Assembly: GCA_002269645.1 (NCBI GenBank)
Contig: NIVC01001810.1
Location: forward strand, 170,752 to 234,751
DNA length: 64,000 bases
Source of the DNA: Macrostomum lignano
Lineage: Eukaryota
Direction of reading: 5' to 3'
Part shown: piece after piece, positions 6,091 to 49,637 of the stretch
How the letters are laid out: every line of letters starts with the position of its first letter
Position numbering within the stretch: the first letter of the stretch is position 1
Made by a program: the position numbers and the translations under genes
Notes under the pieces: model-generated
Seen by the model: the letters and a program-made list of their open reading frames with translations, nothing else
What the model was told of the DNA's origin: nothing
Database searches by the model: none

Positions 6091-8275
<2,185 letters not shown>

Positions 8276-11111: not shown

Positions 11112-11996
11112 CTATGAGCTCTTCTGAGCTTTGCTCGGATCAAAGGAGACCTGCCGAGCGAGCTGTGACACGGTCTGAGCAACGCAATAGTACTTTATAA
11201 TTTCGGCCCTCTCGTTTCTGAACTCGTACGGCTTCTCCGTCATGTGCCGCTTCACGCGCATCATGATGCCCTCCAGGTGCTTCTCTGTGTAAAATCGCTC
11301 GATGTAGTGGCACAGGGTCTGCACGAAGACGCTACCAGTCTGAGGGTCGCGGTAGGACACCTGACCCTCTGTGGTAGGGAAGCAGAACAGGAAGTCACTC
11401 TCTGGAGGGTACAGGGCCGGGTTCTGCGCGAACTCTGGGGGCAGCTGGTCGACTGCCAGCCCCCTGTGCGTCACTTCGTCTTTGCCTCTGCCGCGGCAGG
11501 CCTGGACAAAGAAGATCTTCGGCTTGCCCGCCAGGTCGGGGCAGACGGAGGCCTGGAGGAGGGTTGGGAAATGTGTAGAAATTTGTAGAGCTGCAATGCT
11601 TTGCATCATATGCACAGATGAGCCAGACCCAGACCCACCTTGAACTTGGCTGCGAGCTCCAGAACCGGACTCAGCACTCCATGGCCATGGATAATGCAGT
11701 CCCTTCCCTGTGGGTCCTTGCGGCCGTGGGCCATCAGGAAGCAGACAAAACTGCCGTGCTTGGCGAGCTCCTTGGACTTCTTTGTCTCATTGAGGAAGTC
11801 ATCGATCTCTGCAGTTGTGGGATTTTGCTTCTCCATGATGGTGAAACTCAGCTTCCTGAAAAGCTTCCTCACTCGCTCCACATCCCGCTCCGAGCCTTTG
11901 CGCTCCTCTTCGCCGCTGCCGGCTGAGTACGCGTTGATGTTGATGATGAGGCAGAATCCCTGCGGGTTCGTCACCTGGTAGAAATCCTCGTGGAGT
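11112..11996 (-). CDS. Caspase catalytic domain (p20+p10), two exons
   Basis: Exons 11996-11639 and 11552-11112, separated by an 86-nt GT-AG phase-0 intron. Motifs: PQGFCLIININ, RKGSERD, FLMAHG (catalytic His), KPKIFFVQACRG (catalytic Cys), SDFLFCF, SYRDPQTGSVFVQ. The upstream acceptor TTCCAG at 11998-11997 is phase 2. Confidence 0.95.
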
Positions 11997-12342
11997 CTGG
12001 AATGCAGCAGGGTGATCGGGACGTGAGGCAAATAATATAGAACAGGAATCCCTGGAGACCTTTGCCTGATTCTGTTTTGCATGAGAAGCCTTTGGAATGC
12101 CGTGGAATGCTGTGGCACACTAAATATTATATATAATCTCTTCGATACAAAACTTATATTGAACATGTGAAATCTTTAAACAAATAAGGCTAGCTTTATG
12201 ACACAGACGCATGCACAGCTCAGTTGGTGGCGTAATATAGAATACACAGACACATTTGTGCTCATTTTAGAGTACTTCTGTCTCTGACTCATGCCAATCT
12301 GTCACTGACTCATGCCAATCTTTCATTCCTGCTCACTGACCC

Positions 12343-12383
12343 AGTCCCAGCTGGAGAAGGCGGGGTCCAGAGACGGCCTCGCA
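12343..12383 (-). pseudogene. 41-bp vestige of the kinase exon found in paralogs B and C
   Basis: Acceptor TTTCAG followed by TGCGAGGCCGTCTCTGGACCCCGCCTTCTCCAGCTGGGACT, identical to 48544 onward. Homology then stops and an in-frame TGA follows within a few codons. Confidence 0.85.
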
Positions 12384-12538
12384 CTGAAAGAGGAGAGGGT
12401 TGGGAGACTGAAGCAATGCAGGATGGCTGCAGAAATGGGGAACTGAGCAGGCAGGGAGAGTCTGTCAGCTGATCATTGTGAGCCACTCTTAGCTGAACCG
12501 AATGCAATTTCCCAAGTGAAAAGTGGAAGACGGCCTGC

Positions 12539-13890
12539 CTTGCTGACGGAGTCTCCTCGGACTGCAGCTGCAAGCCCGACATCGCCTGGCCCAGCCTCCG
12601 CTCTTCTCCATCAGGCTGGTGCCGCCGCTGCTCTGCGATCCACTCCCGAATCCGAGCTCCGTGCTGAGAGTTCCGCTCTGCGTAGTCGGCCACCGACTCG
12701 CCACCGGAATCGAGAAGGTCGAATGGGGCGAAGCCGAGAGAGTCCGCGATGAGGCGGAGCGAGTCCAGGTCGTGATACTGAGCAGCCAGGTGAGCAGGTG
12801 TGGCTCCGTTTGAGTCTTTTTCCAACAGACAGGCCGCCGGACCGAGCTCAGAGATGAGCCACTCGAGACAGGAGTTGGTCTCATTCATAGCAGCAAAGTG
12901 AATGGCAGTGCGTTGGACTAGGCCAGGCTGATGGAAGCAGTCGGATCCGAGGACTGATTTGAAGAACTGCATGGAATCGGCGCCCTGAAACTCAGCAGCG
13001 AGATGGACGGGAGTGTTTCCTTGTTGGTCTCGAACGGAGAGACAGTCGGTTCCGCACTCGTTTACCAGCCACTTGAGACAGGAGTTAGTGGCTTCATTCA
13101 TAGCCGCACAGTGAATGGCAGTGCGTTGGACTTGGCCAGGCTGATGAAAGCAGTCGGATCCGAGGACTGATTTGAAGAACTGCATTGAATCGGCGCCCTG
13201 CTTCCAAGCAGCGATATGGACGGGAGTGCTTCCTCGTTGGTCTCGAACGGAGAGACAGTCGGTTCCGCACTCGTTCACCAGCCACTTGAGACAGGAGTTA
13301 GTAGCTTCATTTAAAGCGGCTTTGTGAATGGCAGTTTGTTGTAATAAGCCAGGCTGATGGAAGCAGTCGGATCCGAGGACTGATTTGAAGAACTGCATGG
13401 AATCGGCGCCCTGCTTCCAAGCAGCGAGATGGACGGGAGTGTTTCCTTGTTGGTCTCGAACGGAGAGACAGTCGGTTCCGCACTCGTTCACCAGCCACTT
13501 AAGACAGGAGTTAGTAGCTTCATTCTCAGCGGCCCAGTGAATGGCAGTGCGTTGGAGTCGGCCAGGCTGACGGAAGCAGTCGGATCCGAGGCTGCGGTGA
13601 ATGAGCTCCATCCATGACTCATCTCGACACAAGGCAGCCAGGTGCACAGGAGTGTTGCCTCTTTCGTTGGTGCAGGTGAGGCAGTCGGGTCCGAGTTTCT
13701 TAATAAGAGCCTCGAAGCAGCGGAGACCGTCGGATAGATAGGTCACGTGATGAGCAATGGACCGCTTCAACTGGTTGATGTTGAGTGCGAAGTTGGTGTC
13801 GAGCTGCCGGCAGAGGGGGAGCAGGCGGCCTGCGTCCTTGGCACGGAGGGCTGCAGCGACTTCTTCGCGCACTGAGGCTTGCCGGGCCAT
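12539..13890 (-). CDS. Ankyrin-repeat exon A (about 450 aa), predicted to splice to a downstream effector exon, probably the caspase
   Basis: Open frame with repeated TPVHLAA and TAIHxAA ankyrin motifs in 71-aa di-repeat units. Ends at a phase-2 AAG|GCAGGC donor shared with paralog C. Confidence 0.9.
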
Positions 13891-13939
13891 GTCTGCAGAG
13901 TGGCGCGGACTGCGAGCGCGCTGGGCTGCTCTGTGCCGC

Positions 13940-13946
13940 TTTTATA
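13940..13946 (-). promoter_or_regulatory. TATA box of ANK gene A
   Basis: TATAAAA about 50 nt upstream of the ATG at 13890. It is preceded by a CCGCCC GC-box and followed about 30 nt later by an Inr-like CGCAGT. Confidence 0.6.
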
Positions 13947-14087
13947 TGGGCGGTGCGGAGAGGCGGGCTGAGCGGCATCCGAGCCAGACTACTGTGAGTA
14001 GGCAAAGCAGAGTAAACTGCAGATGCTGTGCTGAGTCTGTCAGTTCTGAGCTCGGAACTCAGCGAGACCGACTGCTGGCCGCAGGTG

Positions 14088-14466
14088 CGCGACACGGGAA
14101 GGTGAGCGACACGGGAAGGTGAGCGACACGGGAAGGTGAGCGACACGGGAAGGTGAGCGACACGGGAAGGTGAGCGACACGGGAAGGTGAGCGACACGGG
14201 AAGGTGAGCGACACGGGAAGGTGAGCGACACGGGAAGGTGAGCGACACGGGAAGGTGAGCGACACGGGAAGGTGAGCGACACGGGAAGGTGAGCGACACG
14301 GGAAGGTGAGCGACACGGGAAGGTGAGCGACACGGGAAGGTGAGCGACACGGGAAGGTGAGCGACACGGGAAGGTGAGCGACACGGGAAGGTGAGCGACA
14401 CGGGAAGGGTGAGCGACACGGGAAGGTGAGCGACACGGGAAGGGTGAGCGACACGGGAAGGTGAGC
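14088..14466. repeat. 17-bp minisatellite GACACGGGAAGGTGAGC
   Basis: About 22 copies; each contains AAG|GTGAG on the + strand. Confidence 0.97.
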
Positions 14467-14980
14467 CCTGCATAAAGGGAAGGGCGAAACTAAGATTGGG
14501 GTACCGGAGAATGGGGACAAATTGGAGAACAAAATGAGCACAAGATATATATCCAGCGCTTCGAATACTGACTCGAACTCAATCCAGCACCTGAATACTC
14601 GAATGTGCAGATCACATGCAGCAGCTGCTCAGCATCAGTGAGCACTGTTGCACAGGAACTCATGACAGCCGATCAGAGGCCCCTGACGTCACCATGAGCG
14701 CCGTCATTGCAGAGCAGCATCAGTGAGCAAGTGAGCACAGCGCAACTCACAGAGGAATATTTTACAATTGATTGCAGCTCATAAATCAGACAAGCTGAAG
14801 TCGACACTCAGAGCGCAGCCTTCTCAGCAACTGCTTGAGCACCTTTGTTTTGCATCAGCCAGCAGGTGGACAGTGGCTTGGAGTGGAGCCACCGACTTTG
14901 AGCACTCTGCTTGCTGAGTAATGTTCATTAATGTACTGATGTGCTTAGTGCTGTACTTTTGCAATAAACCGTTATGTTTT

Positions 14981-15209
14981 AGAGTGCTCCATCACCGGTA
15001 CAAAGTGCTCCATCACCGGTACAGAGTGCTCCATCACCGGTATAGAGTGCTCCATCACCGGTACAGAGTGCTCCATCACCGGTACAGAGTGCTCCATCAC
15101 CGGTACAGAGTGCTCCATCACCGGTACAGAGTGCTCCATCACCGGTACAGAGTGCTCCATCACCGGTACAGAGTGCTCCATCACCGGTACAGAGTGCTCC
15201 ATCACCGGT
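14981..15209. repeat. 21-bp minisatellite AGAGTGCTCCATCACCGGTAC
   Basis: About 11 tandem copies. Confidence 0.97.
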
Positions 15210-15631
15210 GCTCAATAATTAACAAAACACGCAATTCCGTGACTTCAGTTTCTGCAGAAGCAGCAACGATGCTCTCCAGACTCTGTCGAGTCCAGCAAAT
15301 TTCTTCAAAGTGCAGAATCCTCAGAGCCTCATCAAATATATTTAGTCATCAGGCAGGGCGGCAGGGAGGCGTCAAGCGCTCAGGAAGCTGGCAGTTCTGG
15401 CACCAGACTCTGCTCAGAGCTGCTCATAGATCTGCACTCAGCGGGCTGGCTGAGGCCTCGCAGCTCTGATGGGATTTGAGAAGCTGCTGGAGTTGAGCAC
15501 TGCGGGACCTGAGCGACTGGAGCAGGGAGGGACTCAAGCTGATGAGGCTGTGCGAGCGACTCTAAATGCAATGCTCTGGGAGACTGGGGAGAGGGAGAAG
15601 AAGGGATGGAGAAGAGAAGATAGGTAGAATG

Positions 15632-16318
15632 GAGATGCAGCAGTGGGAGATGCAGTGTGCGGGCACAGCATGGGTGCAGCAGTGGGGAGATGCAGTGTGC
15701 GGGCACAGCACGGGTGCAGCAGTGGGAGATGCAGTGTGCGGGCACAGCATGGGTGCAGCAGTGGGAGATGCAGTGTGCGGGCACAGCAGGGGTGCAGCAG
15801 TGGGGAGATGCAGTGTGCGGGCACAGCACGGGTGCAGCAGTGGGAGATGCAGTGTGCGGGCACAGCACGGGTGCAGCAGTGGGAGATGCAGTGTGCGGGC
15901 ACAGCACGGGTGCAGCAGTGGGGAGATGCAGTGTGCGGGCACAGCACGGGTGCAGCAGTGGGAGATGCAGTGTGCGGGCACAGCACGGGTGCTGCAGTGG
16001 GAGATGCAGTGTGCGGGCACAGCACGGGTGCAGCAGTGGGAGATGCAGTGTGCGGGCACGGCACGGGTGCAGCACTGGGAGATGCAGTGTGCGGGCACAG
16101 CAGGGGTGCAGCAGTGGGGAGATGCAGTGTGCGGGCACAGCACGGGTGCAGCAGTGGGAGATGCAGTGTGCGGGCACAGCACGGGTGCAGCAGTGGGAGA
16201 TGCAGTGTGCGGGCACAGCACGGGTGCAGCAGTGGGGAGATGCACTGTGCGGGCACAGCACGGGTGCAGCAGTGGGGAGATGCAGTGTGCGGGCACAGCA
16301 GGGGTGCAGCAGTGGGAG
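15632..16318. repeat. 39-40-bp minisatellite GGGAGATGCAGTGTGCGGGCACAGCACGGGTGCAGCAGT
   Basis: About 17 tandem copies. Confidence 0.97.
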
Positions 16319-16996
16319 GCGGCGGGTTCGCACCTGACAGACTCAATAAAAATTCAATTAACGCACAATGAGCAGCGAATGTACATCAGTGTAAATTACA
16401 GATCAGTCTGGGAAAGGATTGCTAGCCCAGCTCCCTACTCTATTGGGATAAATCCTCAGCTTAAATCCCAAAGCATCCCAAAGCTCAGGGTCAGACTAGC
16501 AATCCACTCCCCGACCCCGCTGGGCCCAGCAGCTCACAGCGGGTGCACACAGCAATTTCAGCTTGCGGATTCGGCAGGGACAACAAAGAGTCACAACAAA
16601 GAGCTGATGGGGACAAGCGGCAGGTGCAGGGGATCACAGAGAGCGGTGCACAGGCGGTGCCAAGCAGTGCATTCTGAAGTGCAGGAGGACTTCAGCGAAT
16701 TGCCAGGTGCAGAAATTTGCACACAGAAATATTTTTTACAGTGCGAGCTGAGCGAATTCAGCAAAGCTGGGCAGAGGGCGCGGCAGCCGCGGCTCTGCGG
16801 CATCTCCGTGTGAGCCGCCCCGGATCTGCCGCTCCTTGGCTAGACTAGCAATCCACTCTGTTTGTGGAATCCAGCAAACCAGGCCCGGGAGCGCCAAGGT
16901 CAAGTCAGTAAAAGTACATCCTGTCACATCCAGGGCATTGCTGATTGACAATTCAGTCCAGCTGCATGGGGCCCGGGCTCGAGCCCCGCACCTCCC

Positions 16997-18019
16997 CTAG
17001 GAGGCCAGCGGCAGCTGCAGCAGGCTGCCGTCCCGTGGCGAGAAGCCGGCGTTGTGGCGCTGCAGGAACAGGTGCACCTCCCGGAACCGCGGCCTGCAGG
17101 CTTCGTCCCGCTGCCAGCACTCGCTCATCAGGTCGAAGAGCTCGCGGGGGCACCGCGGGGGGCGGGGCAGCCAGTCAGACAAACACCGAGCAGCAGCCGC
17201 TCACCTGCTGGTCGGTGAGGTGAGCAAACGGCTGCTCCCTGCAGAAGGTGAGCATCTCCCAGAGCGTCACAGCGAAGCTCCAGACGTCGCTGCGGCAGGA
17301 GAAGCGGCCGTGCAGGACGGCCTCCCAGGCCATCCAGCGGATCGGCAGCGAGGCGCCGCGACCTCCGTCCAGCCTGCAGTAGTCAGCGGAGTAGAGAGGC
17401 TGAGACATGCCAAAGTCGCAGATCTTCACCTGGTAGTCTTCACCCAGCAGGCAGTTGCGGCAGGCCAGGTCTCGGTGCACCAGCTGCAGGGACTCCAGGT
17501 ACTTCATGCCGCTGGCAATCTGAGCTGCCAGGTAGATGAGGCAGCCGTGAGACAGCGGCGGCTCAGCTGATGCTGCAGCGGCTGCTCTGGAGCGCAGGAA
17601 CTGGTGCAGGTCCCCATGCTGCATGAACTCCACCAGGATGCACTGCTGCGCCGCTGCGTCCTTGGTTGCCACGCCCAGCACCCTGACGATGTTCGGGTCC
17701 TGCAGGCGCGCCAACAGCCGCATCTCGCGCCGGAAGTCGCGGCGCGCCTGCGGCCCCGCGCCAGGCCGGAGAGTCTTGGCCGCCACCAGCAGCAGCCGGC
17801 CGCCAGGAGCGGCCCACTCGGCCAGGCGGACCTCGCCGAACTGGCCGGCGCCAAGGCGCTCTTTCAGCGCCACGGAGCCCGGCGCCACCTCGAGAGCGGC
17901 GACCGCGTCGGAGTCGGCGCCGCCGTCCAGATCGTCAGGGACTCCAGCGACACCGCCGCAGTCCATGGCGGAGGCGAGGTCCGCGTCCGGACAGCCGTAG
18001 ACTGTGTTGCCCGAGCAGC
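16997..18019 (-). CDS. Discoidin-domain-receptor-like tyrosine kinase domain; one lesion near 17171-17204; no upstream exons identified
   Basis: Juxtamembrane GNTVY, then LGAGQFGEV, VAAKTL, DPNIVRVLG, HRDLACRN, KICDFGMS, LPIRWMAWE, SDVWSFAVTLWE and CPRELFDLMSECW. Acceptor CCGCAG at 18021-18020 is phase 1. Confidence 0.8.
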
Positions 18020-18729
18020 CTGCGGATTAGGGGAGTAGGGGAATGGATTTAGAGGGGATTATTGGCATTTGGAAGGCCAGCTGCAGCTGATGATGGGGAA
18101 TATGGCGCTCGCTCAGATTTCGGGAAACTCGGACACCAGCAGCTCAGAAATCAGGTGCTCCATCAGCTCAGGACTTGGAGCCTGCCTTCGCTGCTGCCGC
18201 TCGCTCACGCCTCAGGAGTTCAGCGCAGACTGACAGCTCGAAGAAGCTGAGCTGGCTGCATCATCTCAGAGGTGCCGGTGAGGCAAAGTCATCGAGAGGC
18301 TGGCCAAGTGGCCTCATCAGCGGCTGCCCCATCAGTGACGGACCGGCCTGCGGTTACGCAATGAGCTCTGCTCCCCAGCAGAATTCCCTCCTCTCTGCTG
18401 TCTGCCTCACCGGCAGGAAGTGGCTGAGCTGCCTCATCTCTCTCCCAGCCTCTCAGCTGCTCAGTTGATCACTTTCCACTTGATGCGGCTGAGAAGCTGG
18501 GACAAAGAGCTGCTCGCGTGGCTGATAAGTGTTTGATGCTGGGGGCTTCATCAGTGGGGATCTGAGCAGGAATGCGGACTGAGAAGACTCAGGTGTCACC
18601 TGATGGCACTGATAGAGCTCAGTGGGAAATATGAAATGTTGAGGCATTTCGGTAATCCCCAAATCCTCATCACAGGTGAGTCAGGCCACCTGTTGATGTG
18701 CATGCCGTGAGCCTATGAACATGCTGACG

Positions 18730-20820
18730 TTGCAAACGACTTTCTGCCACAGGCGGCACTGGTCTCTTGGAATCGAAAATTGCTAGAAGCGGTTTGTGGC
18801 CAGTGACCAGGATGAAATTTCGACCCAACAGGTACTTATGGAACTTCTTAAGTCCAAATATAATTACCAATGCTTCATTTTCAATTTGGGCATAGTTATT
18901 TTCAGCAGCTGACAGTGTTCTAGAAGCGTAGGCGATTGGCCTGTCTCCGGTCTTTGTTTCATGAGAAATGACCGCACCAAGACCGTAAGGTGAAGCGTCA
19001 TATTCTAGCTTCAGATTCTTGGACAGATCATAGTGAGTCAGCACCTTGCTTGAAGTAAGTTGATCTTTGACTTGCCTGAACGCGGATTCGAACCGGCTGG
19101 CCAGTCGAAATCCTTTTCTTTTCGAAGTCGCAAGTAAAAGGGGTGCATCAGAGTTGCCAGATTCTGGATGAATTTTCCATAATAATTTATCAGTCCAATC
19201 GAAGCCCTTAGCTCGGACACATTTCGTGGGCGTGGAGCCTCATGGATAGCTCTGATCTTGTCCTCAGTTGGGTGAATTCCCTTTTCATCCATCCTGTATC
19301 CAAGGAAAGTGACAGATGTCTGCTCGAATTTACACTTCGACTTCTTTAGTCTGACACCTCGCTCTCGAAAGCGTTGCAAAACCTTCTTCAGATTTTGCAA
19401 GTGTTCCTCGGAATTCTTGCCAACTACTAAAACATCGTCAATGAAGCAGATGACTCCGCTCAGTCCTTGCAGCATCTTGGCCAACTACTAAAACATCGTC
19501 AATGAAGCAGATGACTCCGCTCAGTCCTTGCAAAATCTTGTCCATGGCCATCTGGAAAACTACCGGTCCACTGGCTAGTCCGTATTGCAGCCGCTGGCAC
19601 TGAAACAATCCCTTGTGCGTATTGAGCACAATGTACTGTTTGGAGTCTTCGTCCAATTATAGCTGCAGAAATGCTTGAGTAGCGTCCAACTTAGTGATAT
19701 ACTTGCCTCCATTTAGAGCACTAAACAGATCTTCCTGCCTGGGCAATGGGTACTGGTCGACAATCAGAACCTTGTTCAGTGTCGTCTTGAAATCCGCAAA
19801 TTGTCACTGATCAAAGCGAACAGGCTTTTTGGTTATCAAAATTTCTACGAAGTAAGCAGGGTTACCTCTGTCAAATACCCGATTAATGCTTGGTGGTGAT
19901 ACTCTGGCTTCTTGGCCACACGGTTCATTCGCGAAGTACTCCGTAACCTGCTTGTTGCGAAATCCTTTCAGAGCCACGGTAGACTTACATGCAACTCCCA
20001 GGTGTCCTTCTTTTCCACACTTGTTGCACTTTTTATTACGATGTGGGCAAGCATTTGCCAAGTGATCTGGGCCAGAGCAACGGTAGCACCTGCGAGTAAA
20101 TGTAGGCTTCTCCTTGTTTCCTTCCCTGATTTGGCGGGTCTCAGTAGCGCGTCGAAAAGCTGGCTTCCGCTTCTGGAGCTGGTCGCTTCGAGTGCCAACT
20201 CTGTTCACTGCTGGAGCAGATCCTTGGATGCTGCGAGCGTTCTTGAATGCATTCTCAATGACCTGAGCCTCCTCAACTGTGACATTGAATGTCGAGTCGT
20301 CTTTTAGAGTGGTCAACAGTTTGTTCAACATATGCTCGTCTCTGAGGCCGAAGTCAAAAGCATCGCGGAGCGCTTGATCCAGGAATGCGTCAAACTTGCA
20401 GCTGGCACTGAGGCTTCGAAGACTTACAACGAAGTCGGCTATGGTCTCGCCATCCTTCTGCTTCCTTTGAGCGAATACGAATCGTTGAGCAATAGAGCTC
20501 AATTCCGGTGTAAACTGGTGCCGGAGTGCAGTCAGTAGCTCCTCGCTGGCGCAATTGCGTTCCTCAGAATTGAGTAGGCCTCTTCTCTGATCAGGGTCAG
20601 CAGGTTCGCCTTTTCTCAGCTTCATCAGTGACTTTCTTGGCCACATGAAAATACTCCAGCCGCTCCTCGTACTCCTCCCAGTTCCGAGGGTTGCTGCAGT
20701 TGAATGGTTCGATAACCGGCCTCGTCGCCATTGTTGTGTTTGTATCGTATTTCCTAAAAGCCGTTTTTTATAAAAGCAAGCACGCAGGCTCGAAGCCTAA
20801 GGAACGCAGCTTTCACAACA
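18730..20820 (-). mobile_element. Degenerate Ty3/gypsy (Mag-like) LTR retrotransposon, internally deleted and 3'-truncated
   Basis: 89-bp LTR TGTTGTG...CACAACA at 20732-20820. PBS TGGCGACGAGG (complementary to tRNA-Ser GCU) at 20730-20720. Gag with two CCHC knuckles at 19804-20646, RT (FIDD) and RNase H (DASPYGLGAV, YAQIENEAL). Most of the protease and all of the integrase are missing. Confidence 0.9.
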
Positions 20821-21029
20821 GGCTCATGGCTGCTGCCAGTGTCATGCTGTTTCTGGAACAATCGATCAGCAGTGTCTGTCCAACTGAAGTCGGAGGTCGC
20901 GAACTGCTGCAGAGGCGCCTCTGGCAGGTGAAGAATTTATTATTATTTGCAGTTCTTTGCTCTCTGTTAAACAAAAGTACAAAGCCAGAAGCAGTACCGA
21001 AATGCTCGCATCTCACTGCAATGAGCACC

Positions 21030-21110
21030 ACAGAGCCCGGCGTCACCTCGAGAGCGGCGACCGCGCCAGAGTCCGCGCCATCCAGTCTGACTTTCGAGCG
21101 CCATCTGTCT
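21030..21110 (-). pseudogene. Short relic copy of the DDR-like exon's pre-kinase segment
   Basis: LDGADSGAVAALEVTPGSV here versus LDGGADSDAVAALEVAPGSV at about 17930-17870; the DNA similarity is visible. Confidence 0.7.
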
Positions 21111-21344
21111 GCAGGCGTCACCGCAGGCGCCGGAATTTCTCAGGAATTTCTCAGTCAGCCCATAGACAGCAATAATTTGGTAAACAAAATTCCGCAGTTG
21201 CTATGGAGACAACATGATTTTGTGAATCGGAAATTTTGATGCTTTTGAATCTGTATAAAATATTCTCCATTTATTTATTCCAAAAAATCAGGGTAATTAT
21301 AAGAAAGACTTTAAATTTTGTTTAGCACAAAATGAAATTATAAA

Positions 21345-21718
21345 TATTGCATTCAGGGGATAAATATTGCATTCAGGGGATAAATATTGCATTCAGGGGA
21401 TAAATATTGCATTCAGGGGATAAATATTGCATTCAGGGGATAAATATTGCATTCAGGGGATAAATATTGCATTCTGGGGATAAATATTGCATTCAGGGGA
21501 TAAATATTGCATTCAGGGGATAAATATTGCATTCAGGGGATAATTATTGCAATCAGGGGATAAATATTGCATTCAGGGGATAAATATTGCATTCAGGGGA
21601 TAAATATTGCATTCCGGGGATAAATATTGCATTCAGGGGATAAATATTGCATTCCGGGGATAAATATTGCATTCAGGGGATAAATATTGCATTCCGGGGA
21701 TAAATATTGCAATCAGGG
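21345..21718. repeat. 20-bp minisatellite ATAAATATTGCATTCAGGGG
   Basis: About 18 tandem copies. Confidence 0.97.
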
Positions 21719-22261
21719 AATAGTAAACTTTCGCACACACCATCAGTGATTCAAATTCGCTCATTGCTACTTGTCAGTAGTTGATCTCTCACATCTGGCC
21801 ATCACAAGCAGTCCCTCAGGTGCATAAAAAGTAACTCAGCGTGTCAGCTGTGAAAGCTCCAATTAAAACGCCTTTCTGTCGATAAGAGCTGCAAGAATGC
21901 CTGCAGGGCATGCAGAGCCAGCAGCTGAGCCACAGGGGGCTCACAGATAAGGCCGCCTGTTCACCGCAGCTGAGCCTACTGGAGGCATTCTAGCGGTGAA
22001 ATGCTTGGCGTACTGTTCTGCTCTGACAAAATCAGCAGTGCATTTTATCTAATCATTATTTTGGTGCCATGGCTCAGTGACTTGGCACAGATTTTTCATT
22101 TTAGCACTTTTATATCAGCTCACAGCGAATTTGATTTGGCCTCGAAGTATGCTTAACGGGAGAATATGTTTATGTCTTTGAGGGAGATGATTTCCACTGT
22201 TGACAGTTCTCAGAGAGACAGCGGAACAACAGCAATAAAATCACAGCTTCTGATTGACCAT

Positions 22262-22501
22262 CTGTCACTGACTCATCCCAATCTGTCACTGACTCATGCT
22301 AATCTGTCACTGACTCATGCCAATCTGTCACTGACTCATGCCAATCTGTCACTGACTCATGCCAATCTGTCACTGACTCATGCCAATCTGTCACTGACTC
22401 ATGCCAATCTGTCACTGACTCAGGCCAGTCTGTCACTGAGTCATGCCAGTCTGTCACTGACTCATGCCAGTCTGTCACTGACTCATGCCAGTCTGTCACT
22501 G
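22262..22501. repeat. 21-bp minisatellite CTGTCACTGACTCATGCCAAT starting at the stop codon of kinase B
   Basis: About 11 copies, each with TGACTCA. The same unit occurs at 12283-12320 and 46456-47112. Confidence 0.95.
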
Positions 22502-25500
22502 CAGAAATTTGTGCTCCAGCAGCTCCGCGGTGGCCGCTCGCCTCCTCGGCTCCCTCTGGACGCACCGTCCGTAGAAGTCCCTCAGCAGGGCGGAGGTCCC
22601 GGCCGGCAGCTGCGGCATGTCGTGGTTTCGAATCCTCAGCGGGATCTGCTGCCACATGAGCTGCCCATTCGGAGGCTGCATCTCCAGCATCTCGAACACG
22701 GAGCAGCCGAAAGCCCACACGTCAGTCTTGGGTGAGTACACGATTCTTCCGTCCTCACTGAACAGCTCTGGAGCCATGAAGTAGGGGGTGCCGCAATCCC
22801 TCTTGGTGCTGTGCATCGAGGCGAAGACCTCCTTGGCGAGACCGAAGTCGATCAGCTTGATGAGGCCCTCATTGGTGAGCATCAAGTTGGAGCACTTGAT
22901 GTCACGGTGCAGGGTGACGGGACTGCGGCTGTGCAGGAAGTTGAGCGCTGAGCAGATCTGTGAGTTGGGGAGCGAGTGAGCAGGGGTGGTGTGGGATCTG
23001 AGCTGCTTGGAGAAGTCCCTCACTGCTGCATGAGGTGGTGTGGGATCTGAGCTGCTTGGAGAAGTCCCTCACTGCTGCATGGGATGGTGTGGGATCTGAG
23101 CTGCTTGGAGAAGTCCCTCACTGCTGCATGGGGTGGTGTGGGATCTGAGCTGCTTGGAGAGTCCCTCACTGCTGGATGGAGTGGTGTGGGACGTGAGCTG
23201 CTTGGAGAAGTCCCTCACTGCTGCATGGGGTGGTGTGGGATCTCACCTGCTTGGAGAAGTCCCTCACTGCTGCATGGGGTGGTGTGGGATCTGAGCTGCT
23301 TGGAGAAGTCCCTCACTGCTGCATGGGGTGGTGTGGGATCTCACCTGCTTGGAGAAGTCCCTCACTGCTGCCTCATCGAAGGGCCGTCGCTGCAGCTGCA
23401 TCAGCTCAGAGAGGCTGTGGCCGGAGATCAGCTCGGTGAAGATGCACAGCTTGCCCTTCTTGATGCGCTCAGACTTGAGGAACTGCACGATGTTCGGGTG
23501 CCGGATGGCCTTCAGAACGGAGATCTCCGTATTCTCCTTCTCGATGGCCTCGTCCATCAGCCTGGCGCTGCTGGCACCTGCCAGCTTGACGATCTTGACA
23601 GCCACAGTCTGGCGCTTATCGGTGAACGCCTTGTACACCTTGCCGAAGCCACCTACTCCGAGCAGCTGCTTGTTGCCGTCACCATCGAGAAGGAAGTCCC
23701 AGCTGGAGAAGGCGGGATCCAGAGGCGGCCTTGTACTGAAAGATGTTGAAAGACTGAATGAAGCAAAGCGAGATGGCTGCAGAAATGGGGAACTGAGCAG
23801 GCAGGGAGAGTCTGTCAAGTGATGATGTCATGGGACAGAGTACGGCTGACTAGTTCTATCTCTCTCTCTGTCATCACTGTCCCATTGAAATAGGTACAGC
23901 CAACAACTCTGTTTAATCAAGTCTAGAAGTAATAAGCAATAGCACAACCAAATATATAAAAACAAGCCCTGCTCAGTGGAAGTAAAATCTTAAAGGCTTC
24001 GTGTCAGTAATAGAGCGAAATTTGAATTTTCTACATTGGCATTGCAAACTATCGAACAAACAAGCGCAGTGGCTAATATTATCTCTGTCGCCACGAGTGC
24101 CATTCAATCCATCCAGCTACTCAGTCACGCAGTGGGCGGCCTGGTCAATTAGATTTGACTATTTCATTGCAGCGTCTGGAGTCTCAGAAGAAAACAGAAT
24201 AAGTGCCATTAAATCTGGCCCAGTAAGTGTGGCATCTACTGCTCTCTGGAGATCTCCAGAGAAGTGCAAGCCAATCACACAGACTCAAGAGAATCGCTGG
24301 AGAAGCTTTTGCCTCAACTGACCAAAACCTGGTCTTCGCACGGTATCAGCTTCGGCAGTGCACACAACAGCTGGGAGAGACCATAGACAGCCTGGCACGC
24401 TCGGGTGAAAGCACCCGCTGACACCTGCAACTTCGGAGAACTTCGCGATTCCATCATTCATGATCAGTGGGTCGCCACCTGCCTGTCTGACGCACTTCGT
24501 CGCCGACTACTGCGAGAATCCGACATTGTGCTCAGCGATGCCAAGCATGCAGAAGCGCAAGCAACGGCAATCAAGCTGTCGAAGGACTCGACCGTCGCCG
24601 CAATCAGCACGCAAAGCAAGCCGCCACAGTCAGCAAGCCATTTCCTCACCTGCTGCAGATGCGGCGAGTCCGGCCACAGCAACAGTGATGCTGCTAAAGG
24701 CAAAAGTTCTCGAAGTCCGGTGGATCAATGATGACGTTTTCCGATACGCAGACAGCATGCAACAGCACAATCAGCGCCACGACTGCCTCACCAGATTCTC
24801 AGAGTGCGGACAGCCCGAAAAATTCAGGTTTGCCAAAAGTTCGATCAGCTTTCTCCCAGGGAATTTCGGTGCCAGGTGAGAAAATCAGAGCAGTCAAGGT
24901 GTTTGGGAGGCAGGCTAACATATTGATTTTCTTTGCATTGCGTGATTTAATGTACGTACTTATTATTCAGTTTGCTATGTACGCTGATCTATAGCCCAGG
25001 CAATGTTTCACCCACCTCTCCACTCTGGTTTGATAGTCTGACTGACTGCAAATAAATATATCTTTGAGAGGGTTTTCTAACCCTGTGTGCGGTTCGGTTT
25101 TGTTATCTCGCTTGAGCCTCAGCTCCTAATAGTTTGGCGGACCATCAGTCTCTTCATTTTCTACAGTACTTTCGACCGCCAACCAACGCGTCCGAGACTC
25201 GGTCCTTCCCGCGACTGGCGAATTACCTGTCAAAGTTTATCCAGGGCTTCGCTGACCTGACAGCCCCACTGCGCGAGCCAACCAAGAACTGCAAGGTTTG
25301 GAAATGGACGACTCAGCACAGAGGCCTTTGAGTTCACCAAGCTTGCTGTTGATCCCATCAGCGTTCAATTGCAACAGCTTGAAACCTGGAGGGTCGGCGT
25401 TTCAACACGCCATGTTGGAGGGGAGAGTCGCGGCGGGGAGGTTCAGTCGCATGAAGAGAGGCTGGGAGAGCGGACAGCGGCGAGGCAGAAGTGTTAGCAC

Positions 25501-28500: not shown

Positions 28501-29115
28501 CTTGAGCGACGAATTTGAAACCTCGTTACAAGCAGCCCTGTGAACTGCGGTGCGACCAAGCCACCCGCGCTTACGGAAGCAGTCGGAACCGAGCTTCGAT
28601 TTAATAAACTGCATCGAATCTGCGTTTTGAAACTGGGCGGCCAAATGAACTACTGTCGAGCCATCGTCATCCTTCTCCATTAGAGATTCTGACCCGAGCT
28701 CTCTGATCAGCCACTTCAGCGACTTGTTGCTATGCTCATTCATGGCAGCATAGTGAAACACTGAGCGACCAAATCTTCCCTTTTCATAAAAACAGTCGCT
28801 GCCGAGAGTTCTGTGAATGAGCTGCAGAGTCTCCTGGCTCTGCTCCATGGCGGCCCAGTGCACAGGTGTGTAGTTGAACTCGTCTTTACACGTCAAACAT
28901 GCAGCTCCGAACTTGTCGATCAGCACCCTCAGACAGTCAAGTCCGTACGACTTGCTGGCGACGTGGTGAGTCACCGTCATTTCTCTCGTGTGAGGCGGGT
29001 CTTTAAATTCGCCAGCCGACACTGTCAGGTTGGAGTCCAGCTGCCGGCACAGCCTCAGCAGCCGCTCGCAGTCGTCGGCCTCCAACGCAGCTCGCAATTG
29101 ATCCGCAGCGGCCAT
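22496..29115 (-). CDS. Ankyrin-repeat plus MAP3K/STE-like Ser/Thr kinase, paralog B (about 874 aa)
   Basis: Exons 29115-27344 (ANK, phase-2 GC|GTGAGC donor), 23735-23345 and 22957-22496 are in frame. Kinase motifs intact: [32 protein letters not shown]. The 3.6-kb ANK-to-kinase join is inferred from phase and from paralog C. Confidence 0.8.
22985..23371. repeat. 49-bp minisatellite in the kinase B intron, derived from the exon/intron junction
   Basis: About 7.5 copies; unit is 27 nt of exon end plus 22 nt of intron start. Confidence 0.93.
24080..25340 (+). mobile_element. Highly decayed Ty3/gypsy relic inside the ANK-to-kinase intron
   Basis: Gag-like pieces ([47 protein letters not shown]) and an RT/RNase H-connection piece ([21 protein letters not shown]), with many stops and frameshifts. 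Confidence 0.7.
26326..26905. repeat. 15-bp minisatellite GGGCGCCAGCACCAA
   Basis: About 36 perfect copies. Confidence 0.98.
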
Positions 29116-29558
29116 CGGATGGGGAAGACTCGAGCGGCAGTTGAGTTGAACACCGATCTGAAATTCGTCCGAGATTGGGATTTGTATCGAATGTGCCATG
29201 AGATTTTACAATCTAGAAGATTTCTCTATGCATTAGAGTGGCTTTGGAACTGTCGCTAATCAAGGCTGCAGTCGATCAGAGAGACCAGCGAAGAAGCCAG
29301 CAGTCAAGCACATTCCGCTGACCCCTGAGCACGCTTACAGATATGGATTCGACGCTGCCACAAACCCGAAAAGGGTGCACAGTGGCCTTTACTTTTCAAT
29401 GTCAAGTGTTGTGCCGCGCCCTTCCAGTCCCTTAAGTAGTCCGTGTACCCCATCCTTCTGTTGCCCCCTTGTGCTTTTTGTTTTTTTCGTGTTTTCATGC
29501 TGCCCGATAAACCCCGTGCCGGGGTTTGTGAGGCGTAAGCTTCAACCCTGGTCTAGTC

Positions 29559-30508: not shown

Positions 30509-30527
30509 GCCCTTGAGCAATCAACCC

Positions 30528-39650: not shown

Positions 39651-39737
39651 AAATTTCATAGACCCGTTTAGATGCCTCTAAAGGAGTTATCAGAATCTGA
39701 TCTGATCCTTTAGAATCTGATTCTGTTATTGTATTTT

Positions 39738-42672: not shown

Positions 42673-43439
42673 TCTATTGAGCAAAAAATTCCGACAGTTT
42701 GTCAGATATTTGTCGCAAACAAAAACCCATTATCTACTAATAGTAGTCCTCCCTTTTCAAGAACAATAGAGAATGTACACAAAGTACACATAGCAGTAAT
42801 CCTCTTCCTTCTCTTCAAATTCACTGTTATTTTTGCCATTTTTAGAATGAGCTCTCAATAATTCTCTTCTTAACTCATAAATTTCTTTCTGTTTTGATTC
42901 CTCAATCTGTTTTGTTATTTTCAAAAACGTGTCCGACATTTTGAATGCCTGTGGTGCTATTTTTAAGTGATTTTTTGACATTTTCTCGATCTTCCTTTGC
43001 TTTCTCTGCTCCATTTCTTCTTTCTTCTTTTTCAATTCTTCTTCTTCATTATCGTCTCCAGTGAAGAGGTCTTCCAGTACCATTAATGATCATTCCAAGT
43101 CCCAACATGAATTGACTCTCTGGCGCCAATATTCTTTTCGTTTATCAGGAATCTCTCTCAAAAGTTCTTCAAAGAAATATTTTGCTTCTGTTTTATCTTT
43201 TGTCAACAGACCTTCCATATCGTCAGTCAATCCTGTTCTCATGGTTTCCCCAGCCATGCTCAGAGAGGATACAGCTTAAAGCAGAACGTTGGAGTCTGCG
43301 GCTCTTTAGTAGGTAGAGCTCAAGCAATACAGTAGACACTATAGAGAGAATGAAATTGTTGTCAATAGCAACTAGATTGGGTAAGAGGTTTTGAGTACTG
43401 TTGGATCCACGTATAGGCAAACGTAGTTCCTCCTTTCCG

Positions 43440-45800: not shown

Positions 45801-46334
45801 GAGCAGTGTTGGGGATTGTAAGTTCTCCCTTCATCCAAAATTGACTATTACAGATGTTGGATCCACGTATAGGCAAACGTATTTCCTCCTGTAGAGTACA
45901 ATAGACTCTTTGAGAGAGTACTAACTTGAAATGAGTGTTCCAAAATCCTGAGAAGTTTTACTCAATATCGCACACTTAAAAATTAGTTTTTTATTTAGGG
46001 TTAGGAATTTTCTTAAAAGAAGGGGGTTAAGAATAATTTATTGATTTGAAATTTTTCAAGTGAGTAACAGTCAGGAGTCAGTGGTAGTTATCAAAGTCGC
46101 TAAGAAAAATAATTGATATTTTTAATTGGTTAAAAATAAGCTTTAGAGGGGGGATACTAAGGACATATTTTATAGTTATCTAAATAGTAGTGAATATTAT
46201 ATGGGGGATTTTTGGCCTGTGTCACTGACTCATGACTCACGAATCACTCTTTAAAAACATAAGTTTAAAAACTGTCTTTAGGGGGGTCTAGAACTTCTAA
46301 AGAGAAAAGTACATTTTTCTTAAATATGCTTTTA

Positions 46335-46455
46335 AGTAGTGGATAGAGATATGGAATATGGACACCAAATGAACGAATGAACGAGAAAGTGAAATGAGTG
46401 AATGCCCCCGACGCAGGAGGGTGTGTGGCCATATTCTATATCTCTATCCACTACT
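46335..46455. mobile_element. 121-bp inverted-repeat element (MITE-like)
   Basis: About 30-bp TIRs AGTAGTGGATAGAGATAT(G/A)GAATATGG(A/C)CAC. No clear TSD. Confidence 0.6.
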
Positions 46456-47112
46456 TGTCACTGACTCATGCCAATCTGTCACTGACTCATGCCAATCTGT
46501 CACTCACTCATGCCAGTCTGTCACTGACTCATGCCAGTCTGTCACTGACTCATGCCAGTCTGTCACTGACTCATGCCAATCTGTCACTGACTCATGCCAG
46601 TCTGTCACTGACTCATGCCAGTCTGTCACTCACTCATGCCAGTCTGTCACTCACTCATGCCAGTCTGTCACTGACTCATGCCAGTCTGTCACTCACTCAT
46701 GCCAATCTGTCACTCACTCATGCCAGCCTGTCACTGACTCATGCCAATCTGTCACTCACTCATGCCAATCTGTCACTGACTCATGCCAGTCTGTCACTCA
46801 CTCATGCCAGTCTGTCACTCACTCATGCCAGTCTGTCACTGACTCATGCCAATCTGTCACTGACTCATGCCAATCTGTCACTGACTCATGCCAATCTGTC
46901 ACTGACTCATGCCAATCTGTCACTCACTCATGCCAATCTGTCACTCACTCATGCCAATCTGTCACTGACTCATGCCAGTCTGTCACTGACTCATGCCATT
47001 CTGTCACTGACTCGTGCCAATCTGTCACTGACTCATGCCAATCTGTCACTGACTCATTCCAATCTGTCACTGACTCATGCCCATCTGTCACTGACTCATG
47101 CCAGTCTGTCAC
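46456..47112. repeat. 21-bp TGACTCA-containing minisatellite at the stop codon of kinase C
   Basis: About 31 copies of the same unit as 22262-22501. Confidence 0.95.
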
Positions 47113-49637
47113 TGCAGAAATTTGTGCTCCAGTAGCTCCGCGGTGGCCGCTCGCCTCCTCGGCTCCCTCTGGATGCACCGGCCGTAGAAGTCCCTCAGCA
47201 GGGCGGAGGTCCCGGCCGGCAGCTGCGGCATGTCGTGTCTTTGAATCCCCAGCGGGATCCGATACCACTCGAGCTGCCAGTTCGGAGGCTGCATCTCCAG
47301 CATCTCGAACACGGAGCAGCCGAAAGCCCACACGTCAGTCTTGGGTGAGTACACGATTCTTCCGTCCTCACTGAACAGCTCAGGAGCCATGAAGTAGGTG
47401 GTGCCGCAATCCCTCTTGGTGCTGTGCATCGTGGCGAAGACCTCCTTGGCGAGACCGAAGTCGATCAGCTTGATGACGCCCTCATTGGTGAGCATTATGT
47501 TGGAGCACTTGATGTCACGGTGCAGGGTGACGGGACTGCGGCTGTGCAGGAAGTGGAGCGCTGAGCAGATCTGTGAGTTGGGGAGCGAGTGAGCAGGGGT
47601 GGTGTGGGATCTGAGCTGCTTGGAGAAGTTTCTCACTGCTGCATGGGCTGGTGTGGGATCTGAGCTGCTTGGAGAAGTCCCTCACTGCTGCATGGGGTGG
47701 TGTGGGATCTGAGCTGCTTGGAGAAGTCCCTCACTGCTGCATGTAGTGGTGTGGGATCTGAGCTGCTTGGAGAAGTCCCTCACTGCTGCATGGGGTGGTG
47801 TGGGATCTGAGCTGCTTGGAGAAGTCCCTCACTGCTGCATGGGGTGGTGTGGGATCTGAGCTGCTTGGAGAAGTTTCTCACTGCTGCATGGGCTGGTGTG
47901 GGATCTGAGCTGCTTGGAGAAGTCCCTCACTGCTGCATGGAGTGGTGTGGGATCTGAGCTGCTTGGAGAAGTCCCTCACTGCTGCATGGGCTGGTGTGGG
48001 ATCTGAGCTGCTTGGGAAGTCCCTCACCGCTGCATGTAGTGGTGTGGGATCTGAGCTGCTTGGAGAAGTCCCTCACTGCTGCATGGGGTGGTGTGGGATC
48101 TGAGCTGCTTGGAGAAGTCCCTCACTGCTGCATGGGGTGGTGTGGGATCTCACCTGCTTGGAGAAGTCCCTCACTGCTGCCTCATCGAAGGGCCGTCGCT
48201 GCAGCTGCATCAGCTCAGAGAGGCTGTGGCCGGAGATCAGCTCGGTGAAGATGCACAGCTTGCCCTTCTTGATGCGCTCAGACTTGAGGAACTGCACGAT
48301 GTTCGGGTGCCGGATGGCCTTCAGGACGGAGATCTCCGCGTTCTCTATCTTGATGGCCTCGTCCATCAGCCTGGCGCTGCTGGCACCTTCCAGCCTGACG
48401 ATCTTGACAGCCACAGTCTGGCGCTTATCGGTGAACGCCTTGTACACCTTGCCGAAGCCGCCTGCTCCGAGCAGCTGCTTGTTGCCGTCACCATCGAGAA
48501 GGAAGTCCCAGCTGGAGAAGGCGGGGTCCAGAGACGGCCTCGCACTGAAAGAGGAGAGGGTTGGGAGACTGAAGCACTGCGGGATGGCTGCAGAAATGGG
48601 GAACTGAGCAGGCAGGGAGAGAGTCTGTCAGGTGATCATTGTGAGCCACTCTTAGCTGAACCGAATGCAATTTCCCAAGTGAAAAGTGGAATACGGCCTG
48701 CCTTGCTGACGGAGTCTCCTCGGACTGCGCGTCCACCGCCCGCCGCAGCTGCAAGCCCGACATCGCCTGGCCCAGCCTCCGCTCTTCTCCATCACGCTGG
48801 TGCCGCCGCTGCTCTGCGATCCACTCCCGAATCCGAGCTCCGTGCTGAGAGTTCCGCTCTGCGTAGTCGGCCACCGACTTGCCACCGGAATCGAAAAAGT
48901 CGAATGGGGCGAGGCCGAGAGAGTCCGCGATGAGGCGGAGCGAGTCTAGGTCGTGATGCTGAGCAGCCAGGTGAGCAGGTGTGGCTCCGTTTGAGTCTTT
49001 TTCCAACAGACAGGCCGGACCGAGCTCAGAGATGAGCCACTTGAGACAGGAGTTGGTCTCATTCATAGCAGCAAAGTGAATGGCAGTGCGTTTGCAATTG
49101 CCAGGCTGATGGAAGCAGTCGGATCCGAGGACTGATTTGAAGAACTGCATGGAATCGGCGCCCTGAAACTTAGCAGCGAGATGGACGGGAGTGTCTCCGG
49201 CTTGGTCTCGAACGGAGAGACAGTCGGTTCCGCACTCGTTCACCAGCCACTTGAGACAGGAGTTAGTCTCATTCCTAGCGGCCCGGTGAATGGCAGTGCG
49301 TTGTAAGTAGCCAGGCTGATGGAAGCAGTCGGATCCGAGGACTGATTTGAAGAACTGCATGGAATCGGAGCCCCGAAACTTAGCAGCGAGATGGACGGGA
49401 GTGTCTCCGGCTTGGTCTCGAACGGAGAGACAGTCGGTTCCGCACTCGTTCACCAGCCACTTGAGACAGGAGTTAGTCTCATTCATAGCGGCTTGGTGAA
49501 TGGCAGTGCGTTGTAAGTAGCCAGGCTGATGGAAGCAGTCGGATCCGAGGACTGATTTGAAAAACTGCATGGAATCGGCGCCCTGCTTCCAAGCAGCGAG
49601 ATGGACGGGAGTGTCTCCATCTTGGTCTCGAACGGAG
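47109..49637 (-). pseudogene. Ankyrin-repeat plus MAP3K/STE-like kinase, paralog C, 5' part cut off by the Polinton insertion
   Basis: ANK exon 49637-48702, 157-nt GC-AG intron, kinase exons 48544-48154 and 47570-47109 (391 and 462 nt, same lengths as paralog B). Kinase motifs intact. ANK homology stops mid-repeat at 49637 with no acceptor AG. Confidence 0.85.
47590..48180. repeat. 49-bp junction-derived minisatellite in the kinase C intron
   Basis: About 11.5 copies of the same unit as in paralog B. Confidence 0.93.

Follow-up and report, generated by a model that had tools for sequence, protein, structure and literature searches.

Does a cluster of ankyrin-repeat (ANK) exons of Macrostomum lignano, a flatworm with a free-living habit, belong to a gene family that exchanges effector domains and, if so, where do the exchanges take place? 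The cluster lies in the final 64 kb (64,000 nucleotides, hereafter the window) of the 234,751-bp contig NIVC01001810.1 (GCA_002269645.1; contig coordinate = window coordinate + 170,751), in eukaryotic, repeat-rich sequence with numerous minisatellites and transposon fragments. Its minus strand carries three single-exon ANK arrays (ANK1 to ANK3), two STE20-like kinase exon pairs (K2 and K3), and one caspase-3/7-like exon pair. We report that the window is a tandem cluster of an M. lignano-specific gene family, in which splicing across a conserved phase-2 intron links an ANK exon to an effector cassette, kinase or caspase; that ANK1-caspase is a transcribed hybrid whose former kinase effector has been replaced by a caspase; and that ANK2, K2, and ANK3-K3 are further breakage products in or beside the same intron or minisatellites. 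A preceding sequence-only reading had proposed a modular family of this kind, and its central claim stands: a phase-2 intron joins one homologous ANK exon to unrelated effectors.

Sequences compared

Junctions in the window were read directly from the sequence, with joins checked by translation; domains were assigned with Pfam and tandem repeats with Tandem Repeats Finder (TRF). The window was compared to itself and to four other annotated M. lignano loci, L001–L004, and domain screening covered part of 150 representative matches. Three RNA-based protein models recur below: P0393, which is GenBank PAA63849.1 (gene BOX15_Mlig013715g1), and the ANK-kinases P0215 and P0389. P0217 is an ANK2-type ANK-kinase in L003, P0001 is a UniProt model from the older assembly, and P0019, P0027, and P0080 are gene predictions from that assembly. 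The BOX15_Mlig models in GenBank come from a genome-guided RNA-seq transcriptome assembled with StringTie, TACO, and TBONE, with open reading frames (ORFs) called by TransDecoder (PMC5730564).

A transcribed gene with a replaced effector

The sequence-only reading had joined the ANK1 array to the caspase exons, and the RNA-seq-derived PAA63849.1 proves identical to that model, GC donor included. The protein consists of ‘PRHSAD’ followed by the exact product of 13890..12539, 11996..11639, and 11552..11112. Across its GC-AG intron (12539 to 11996) it reads LQLQSEETPSAR/LHEDFYQ (a slash marks the point of junction here and below), the residues at the join being ETPSAR/LHEDF, and this junction was absent from every other protein retrieved in the analysis. 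The gene spans 2797 nt (window 13908..11112); its coding sequence is annotated from 13908, which adds the six N-terminal residues ahead of the ATG at 13890, and the protein belongs to the 90% cluster of the window caspase. Window region 11900–12700 matches NIVC01001810.1 at 100% identity. That the odd neighborhoods described below are misjoins in a repeat-rich draft contig is very improbable: the window does lie at the end of such a contig and the breakpoints do coincide with minisatellites, yet a spliced RNA-based model runs across the ANK1-caspase junction, and in-frame spliced reads would not come from a misjoin.

The ANK half of this gene is of the kinase type. The ANK1 exon shares 91–95% identity with its counterpart in the ANK-kinase gene P0215, and its C-terminal cap (C-cap) and linker are kinase-type, not caspase-type. 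Proceeding 3′ from the ANK1 donor, there follow in order a kinase-type intron, a 41-nt exon relic, two to three minisatellite units, a unique stretch of ∼90 nt, the final ∼190 nt of a caspase-type intron, and the caspase exons. All 41 nt of the relic (41/41) match K3 exon 1, and the relic is skipped in the annotated mRNA. The 5′ half of the kinase-type intron, used as a probe, occurs only after ANK1 and after ANK3. From 12188 onward, the caspase-type intron part and caspase exons are 91% identical to L001, and comparison with L001 and L004 shows that the ANK1-caspase intron lacks what forms the 5′ half in canonical ANK-caspase genes. We also considered the relic as a cassette exon, and rejected this: it offers two possible GT donors, one of phase 0 and one of phase 1, and neither fits the phase-2 caspase acceptor.

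This arrangement shows descent from an ANK-kinase gene whose kinase was removed by a deletion running from exon 1, codon 14, into the downstream minisatellite; what was left of the gene was fused to an ANK-caspase intron's 3′ half. The reading frame survived the swap because the kinase-type and caspase-type introns are both phase 2, and because the caspase comes with the 3′ half of an ANK-caspase intron, recombination between two genes is indicated. That intron half also speaks against another origin, in which an ancestor resembling the ANK-kinase-caspase Mlig018903 would have produced single-effector genes by losing one effector or the other. Such a tripartite protein does exist (P0265, Mlig018903g1-3) in three annotated gene copies, and the one M. 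lignano caspase with a kinase-like prodomain that has been placed sister to the ANK-caspase clade (PMC11463336) is probably of this Mlig018903 type. Yet P0265 has a different ANK type, and its kinase and caspase both fall in distant clades (the caspase at 38% identity), and P0027 pairs ANK type A with a kinase clade otherwise found on ANK type B; we regard differential loss as improbable.

Textbooks describe exon shuffling between introns of compatible phase, yet to our knowledge it is rarely seen with its intermediate preserved. ANK1-caspase keeps that intermediate, as a transcribed gene in whose intron lie the initial 41 nt of the effector exon it once used. Coordinates for this gene and for the other members of the cluster are collected in Table 1.

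Table 1. ANK, kinase, and caspase features of the cluster, in window coordinates
Feature	Position	Strand	Remarks
ANK1 exon	12539..13908	-	N-terminal cap, three internal 71-aa di-repeats, kinase-type C-cap and linker; gene BOX15_Mlig013715g1
Kinase-type intron, 5′ part of the present ANK1-caspase intron	12384..12538	-	Colinear with 48545..48701 and L002
Kinase exon 1 relic, 41 nt	12343..12383	-	Identical to start of K3 exon 1; acceptor kept
21-bp minisatellite relic, ∼2–3 units	12279..12342	-	Normally follows the kinase stop codon
Caspase-type intron, 3′ part	11997..12188	-	Polypyrimidine tract and AG; 91% identical to L001 and L004 from there on
Caspase exon A	11639..11996	-	Phase-2 acceptor; p20 start LHEDFYQV to catalytic His (AHG); Pfam
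Caspase exon B	11112..11552	-	QACRG active site; stop TAG at 11114..11112; Pfam
K2 kinase exon 1	23345..23735	-	Phase-2 acceptor; G-loop, VAVK lysine
K2 intron	22958..23344	-	Filled by 49-bp minisatellite
K2 kinase exon 2	22496..22957	-	Stop codon; Pfam, TRF
ANK2 exon	27344..29199	-	Likely start codon 29115 (MAAADQL); GT donor
ANK3 array	48702..49637	-	2.9 di-repeats, kinase-type C-cap and linker; 5′-truncated
K3 kinase exon 1	48154..48544	-	Phase-2 acceptor
K3 kinase exon 2	47109..47570	-	Stop codon, then directly the 21-bp minisatellite 46456..47114

The surroundings of the three kinase-type units point to where such events may occur. On the far side of the 21-bp minisatellite, ANK1, K3, and K2/L002 each have a different flank, and these differing flanks, taken with the intron breakpoints, suggest that the minisatellites and the intron are recombination sites. 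The block 23826..12343 contains K2, a retroelement, a DDR-like tyrosine-kinase exon, minisatellites, and ANK1; its order is that of L002 circularly permuted, and it looks like one unit-length slice of a tandem duplication. The 21-bp minisatellite itself (22260–22501, 46456–47114, and the relic 12279–12342) begins at the kinase stop, the TGA lying within its first unit.

A shared exon boundary of phase 2

The window had been read as holding three paralogous single-exon ANK arrays on the minus strand, all with phase-2 donors, and first effector exons all with phase-2 acceptors; each element of that description is borne out. Pfam Ank_2 matches three minus-strand ORFs (13890..12310, E = 1.7e-34; 29199..27340, 2.1e-43; 49666..48488, 9.2e-28), and on the same strand Peptidase_C14 matches 12166..11606 and 11615..11112, and Pkinase matches 23818..23264 with 23023..22496 and 48447..48073 with 47636..47109. 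Every array is a single uninterrupted ORF of 210/213-bp units, with two ankyrin repeats per unit, which match one another at 88–93% over 600–735 bp according to TRF. As for the junctions, reading and translation agree for the donors at 12539, 27344, and 48702 and the acceptors at 11996, 23735, and 48544: each acceptor gives the third base of a split codon, so all six sites are phase 2.

The ANK1 and ANK3 donors (last exon bases 12539 and 48702) both read AG/GCAGGC, with GC rather than GT, while the ANK2 donor, GC/GTGAGC at 27344, overlaps the TGA that closes its ORF. The GC donor of the 48702 type is also used by P0215 (L002, identical donor sequence) and P0389 (...ETPSAS/ARP...), and the 27344-type donor is in use in P0217 (GA/GTGAGC). 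P0001 takes instead a GT donor, CC/GTCAGC, 9 nt upstream of the GC donor and likewise phase 2; as the donor in use, this site is ruled out by the RNA-based P0215, P0389, and P0393, which employ the GC donor. Canonical ANK-caspase genes have a further phase-2 donor, CC/GTAAGT. Because the ANK exon, including its linker, is homologous right to the donor across kinase- and caspase-bearing subtypes (SVADYA..NS...IAE.R...QSE[EK]TP), the agreement in donor phase is inherited, not coincidental.

A 49-bp minisatellite occupies the kinase-gene intron (22983–23371 and 47596–48180; also in L002), with 8 copies in K2 and 12 in K3. Its unit copies the last 27 nt of exon 1 together with the intron start, and some copies retain the GT donor (e.g. 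near 23246), use of which would shift the frame because 49 is not a multiple of 3.

ANK2, K2, and ANK3-K3

The sequence-only reading went further and counted two ANK-kinase genes in the window, a count that is not established. ANK3-K3 (49637..47109) is colinear with the ANK-kinase gene P0215 at 95.5% identity, and so matches transcribed paralogs, though it is itself unannotated and truncated: the array breaks off at ∼49637 into unrelated sequence, without N-terminal cap or start codon, and the contig ends 14 kb beyond. The other supposed pair, ANK2 and K2, is unpartnered. K2 (23735..22496) is 94–95% identical to K3 and to the L002 kinase, and its homology to ANK-kinase genes ends at 23826, ∼90 nt upstream of the acceptor, so that it is left without an ANK exon of its own. 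A search upstream of K2 recovered neither the kinase-type intron's 5′ half nor inverted repeats marking a transposon insertion.

ANK2 is a divergent subtype, with DNA identity to ANK3 of just 66–68%. Its closest relative is the ANK exon of P0217, at 81% protein identity; homology to the P0217 gene ends at 27150, ∼190 nt past the donor, and the window contains no kinase of the P0217 type. The 3.6 kb between ANK2 and K2 hold a 15-bp minisatellite together with unclassified sequence. Since the kinase expected with ANK2 is absent and the 5′ half of the intron belonging to K2 is missing, the two are not original partners, each having lost its own partner at an intron breakpoint. A join from 27344 to 23735 is hypothetical, because no protein cluster exists for ANK2 at ≥90% identity. 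Exact database look-ups of the unspliced ANK1 ORF, the unspliced ANK2 ORF, and P0121 gave no match.

Effector domains

Catalytic motifs are intact in all the effector exons. For the kinases, the active-site motifs are all present (GxGxFGx... and APE), and the best matches in the PDB are STK10, STK24, SLK, MST4, PAK, and MAP3K5 (E ∼1e-37), with no RIPK or ILK in the top 60; the closest named match outside Macrostomum is an STK24 homologue at 32% identity, and no orthology to a named subfamily is evident. For the caspase, AHG and QACRG align with the catalytic residues of caspase-7, and caspases 7 and 3 are closest. Neither K2 nor the caspase has an in-frame ATG upstream of its essential motifs, and the effector cassettes therefore need an upstream exon. 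Reading of the N-terminus revealed no evident signal peptide or transmembrane segment, on which basis the ANK-effector proteins are predicted to be cytosolic.

Hypervariable positions on a near-invariant repeat

From the window, L001, L002, and L004 we took 32 internal units of 70/71 aa, 27 of them unique. Sixty-two unit positions are almost invariant and nine (8, 9, 11, 16, 19, 45, 47, 55, and 56) have an entropy of 1.0–2.8 bits; outside these nine hypervariable positions the repeats are about 90% identical. When aligned to the ANK/DARPin consensus, eight of the nine coincide with ankyrin repeat positions 2, 3, 5, 13, and 14. Those positions, in the beta-turn and first helix, are the ones randomized in DARPins, where they form the binding face, and the alignment thus maps the hypervariable positions to the putative ANK binding face. 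A single-sequence AlphaFold2 model of ANK1 was too poor (predicted local distance difference test score, pLDDT, 54.6) to confirm this mapping or to search folds.

Substitution rates follow the same division. Framework codons have a non-synonymous rate (dN) of 0.007 and a synonymous rate (dS) of 0.045, giving dN/dS 0.16, as compared to dN 0.62 for the nine hypervariable codons (Nei-Gojobori), a ∼90-fold contrast. The number of repeats also varies among paralogs, from 3 to >11 units.

The gene family in M. lignano

Both near-identical matches (rounded to 100%) and 87–93% identical matches to the kinase module were found solely among M. lignano proteins. A search with ANK2 at E<1e-20 retrieved 25 clusters, 23 from M. 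lignano (12 ANK-kinase, 3 ANK-caspase, and 8 ANK-only), which is a minimum for the family, and two of generic, only remotely similar ANK proteins. Scanning of the ANK-only members with Pfam gave no sign of a third type of effector. The local expansion proposed beforehand is apparent as tandem clusters in the window and in L001–L004. L001 and L004 each hold two ANK-caspase genes, L002 has two ANK-kinase genes in tandem, and in L003 the ANK-kinase gene P0217 is accompanied by an ANK-only gene 4.5 kb downstream and by a further ANK2-type array and kinase-exon start upstream. With an ANK-caspase as query (full-library search and Pfam), a further two ANK-caspase clades of M. lignano came to light, whose ANK type is different and non-repetitive.

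A second, independent effector swap seems visible when P0019 is compared to P0027: their ANK cap and linker are ∼82% identical, as against ∼36% for their kinases from the junction onward, and the P0027 kinase shares 65% identity with the kinase of P0080, a protein bearing the other ANK type, though this three-way comparison of gene predictions carries less weight. Together with the kinase-type C-cap, linker, and intron and the 41-nt relic retained in the transcribed ANK1-caspase gene, it upholds the earlier proposal that effectors are swapped.

Two minor observations concern M. lignano caspases. Fusions of Ras/Roc domains to caspases (P0250/P0381; Mlig000293g2, Mlig021837g1) show that caspase N-terminal modules are unusually varied in this species. 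In L004, at ∼3437–3730, P0216 (Mlig032136g1) shows a frameshift in caspase exon B when compared with its paralogs, which may reflect a pseudogene or an assembly indel.

Comparison with known proteins

ANK-caspases were first noted in Schistosoma and have been surveyed in Genome Biol Evol 2024, where they are described as a clade restricted to parasitic flatworms (PMC11463336). The M. lignano proteins resemble them in having an ANK prodomain directly N-terminal to the C14 domain, in one transcribed chain with an intact His/Cys dyad, in a flatworm. They differ in that the ANK exon is common to a larger STE20-like kinase set, and in their hypervariable di-repeats, tandem clusters, and recent kinase-to-caspase replacement. 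All matches checked that had both ANK and C14 were from M. lignano; the likeness to the parasite proteins is one of architecture. The parasite-only distribution does not fit the free-living M. lignano, in which ANK-caspases form at least three clades; it is the stated distribution that calls for revision, not these genes for exclusion, and the finding extends ANK-caspases to a free-living flatworm, contrary to the published statement that they are parasite-specific.

The sequence-only reading had not recognized the genes as a described family, which is correct in part: flatworm ANK-caspases are published (PMC11463336), while the ANK-STE20 kinases, hypervariable arrays, and shared exon are undescribed in the literature we found. 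Our literature search returned no description of M. lignano ANK-caspases, of an ANK-STE20 kinase expansion, of the shared exon, or of the hypervariable repeats, and nothing for the gene identifiers. Proteins of the family are labelled ‘hypothetical’ in GenBank.

The repeats themselves are best matched in fungi. Fungal NLR proteins with highly internally conserved (HIC) ANK, TPR, or WD repeats show ≥85% repeat identity, variable repeat number, variation on the concave face, and combinatorial effectors including kinases; their ANK repeats are reported to be under positive diversifying selection, and highly conserved internal repeats occur in only ∼0.8% of metazoan repeat proteins (PMC4986451). 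The M. lignano arrays share with the fungal HIC NLRs (Dyrka et al. 2014) near-identical repeats (≥85% over ≥100 aa), a repeat number that differs among paralogs, and assorted effectors, along with an excess of non-synonymous change and variability on what the alignment predicts to be the binding face. A repeat architecture like that of fungal NLRs, rare among metazoans, is thereby found in an animal. Unlike the fungal proteins, however, these belong to an animal, use a phase-2 spliceosomal intron as the module boundary, and have neither NACHT nor NB-ARC: Pfam matched neither domain in the window proteins or in 36 family members and related matches scanned. The domain order is also the reverse of that in NLRs, with ANK N-terminal and effector C-terminal, as compared to an N-terminal effector and C-terminal sensor. 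The NLR-type design suggested earlier accordingly survives as an analogy; the family may work like a sensor-effector immune receptor, but, lacking NACHT/NB-ARC and having the reversed order, it is not NLR.

ILK, TNNI3K, RIPK4/ANKK1, and DAPK1 likewise combine ANK and kinase in one chain, and in ILK and TNNI3K the ANK is also N-terminal, but the M. lignano kinase is STE-type, not TKL or CAMK. These animal ANK-plus-kinase proteins are single-copy conserved genes without hypervariable arrays. RIPK4/ANKK1 have an N-terminal RIP-type (TKL) kinase followed by ANK repeats; with its reversed domain order and STE-like kinase, the present family does not belong to that type. Inflammasome-type sensors (NLR/PYD/CARD) are similar in placing a repeat sensor upstream of a proximity-activated caspase, whereas here sensor and caspase form one chain, with no death-fold adaptor and no nucleotide-binding oligomerization (NOD) domain, and the catalytic domain is nearest the executioner caspases 3/7.

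Possible function

We consider it reasonably probable that this modular tandem family, with its transcribed hybrid, uses the ANK array as a diversifying ligand sensor that clusters caspase or kinase effectors, most plausibly in innate defense or non-self recognition. The array would provide a cytosolic ligand-binding surface, diversified by repeat shuffling and by substitutions at the nine binding-face positions. A multivalent or clustered ligand could bring effector domains together, such that the caspase would be activated by induced proximity (with a possible prodomain cleavage site, LHED/F) and the kinase by trans-autophosphorylation, the output being cell death or MAPK-type signaling. The proteins would then be receptors that dispense with a NOD domain. 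The immune-receptor role is a hypothesis.

Several points weigh against this proposal. The activation step is conjecture, since there is no oligomerization (NOD) module. The dN of the nine sites is inflated, because the data themselves guided the choice of those sites. Reads from paralogs of 90–95% identity could feed the ANK1-caspase transcript model, and contig NIVC01001810.1 has no transcript model for ANK2 to K2 or for ANK3-K3. Among the kinases of K2, K3, and L002, dN/dS is 0.38–0.74, and for the caspase it is 0.99 against its L001 paralog (21 non-synonymous and 6 synonymous differences), both from small counts; effector constraint appears relaxed, which fits either post-duplication redundancy or rapid adaptive change. 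Finally, M. lignano line DV1 has undergone a recent large-scale (genome or chromosome) duplication, with 180 Mb of the assembly duplicated at ≥95% identity (PMC5730564), and many copies may be redundant and decaying.

The last two points would be expected if the hybrid, the two orphans (K2 and ANK2), and the truncated ANK3-K3 were all decaying pseudogenes left by duplication and rearranged by minisatellites and transposons, with the ANK1-caspase transcript incidental. In keeping with this, rearrangement has affected each of the four junction regions, transposons and minisatellites abound in this part of the contig, and GenBank annotates just one gene within window 1112–23908. Decay is nonetheless hard to reconcile with the open frames, splice sites, and catalytic motifs intact in every ANK and effector exon, with framework codons that are strongly constrained or homogenized, and with a hybrid spliced in frame in an RNA-based annotation, and we judge this explanation unlikely.

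The genes could instead be functional and non-immune, their arrays scaffolding endogenous partners in cell death or MAPK signaling (for tissue turnover, germline, or regeneration), with repeat variability due to gene conversion and relaxed exposed residues. The effectors are indeed generic apoptosis and MAPK enzymes, and ANK-caspases of parasitic flatworms have been discussed as candidate apoptotic initiators (PMC11463336). We find this rather less convincing than a sensor role, though not as implausible as wholesale decay, since it does not readily account for variation limited to nine positions of the predicted binding face on a near-invariant framework, for paralogs that differ so widely in repeat number within a large species-specific tandem expansion, or for the same pattern in fungal NLR ANK repeats with their reported diversifying selection (PMC4986451).

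The diversifying-sensor proposal has a bolder form, which we advance tentatively: the type-A arrays may constitute a rapidly diversifying germline repertoire of cytosolic recognition modules, a NOD-less class of one-chain flatworm receptors that would link ligand binding without intermediary to caspase-mediated death or STE20/MAPK signaling, and whose pairings are continually made by recombination in the phase-2 intron and minisatellites. If so, ANK1-caspase, with its kinase-exon fossil, would be a newly made receptor-effector pairing. M. lignano is amenable to transgenesis and RNA interference, and the candidate death and signaling receptors are directly testable there.

Other contents of the window

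Between K2 and ANK1, at 17175–17966 (-), lies an exon with most of a receptor tyrosine-kinase domain, closest to DDR1/DDR2 (E = 4e-73) and unannotated on the contig; L002 holds a 97% identical copy at the same position relative to its ANK array. A retroelement fragment at 18670–20646 (-) lies within the block common to the window and L002, and is the second such element in the window, the other being an LTR (long terminal repeat) retrotransposon frame set at 30708–34466 (+) with gag bearing a zinc knuckle, protease, reverse transcriptase, RNase H, and integrase. Glutamine synthetase exons (GIEQEYT...) at 2929–3474 and 4449–∼4750 (+), for which GenBank calls no gene, are surrounded by a 20-bp minisatellite (3435–4276) and a 13-bp minisatellite (4756–5678), with a 2.2-kb (AACT)n tract downstream (6080–8287).

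A Maverick/Polinton-like element occupies ∼52600–58500 (+), with an rve integrase (52645–53682), a protein-primed family-B DNA polymerase (55627–57926, DTDS), and a weak match to adenovirus-type cysteine protease (58179–58511). Two further fragments, at 37949–38380 (-) and 39928–40437 (-), come from a piggyBac-type transposase (DDE_Tnp_1_7, E = 2e-30) and an integrase. Very long minisatellites occur at 43425–45800, 42151–42673, 26327–26923, 15636–16318, and 14083–14466, with 11-bp, 15-bp, 39/118-bp, and 17-bp units and including 61 copies of a 39-bp unit; several are open in all three forward and three reverse frames, and so give rise to many spurious long ORFs.

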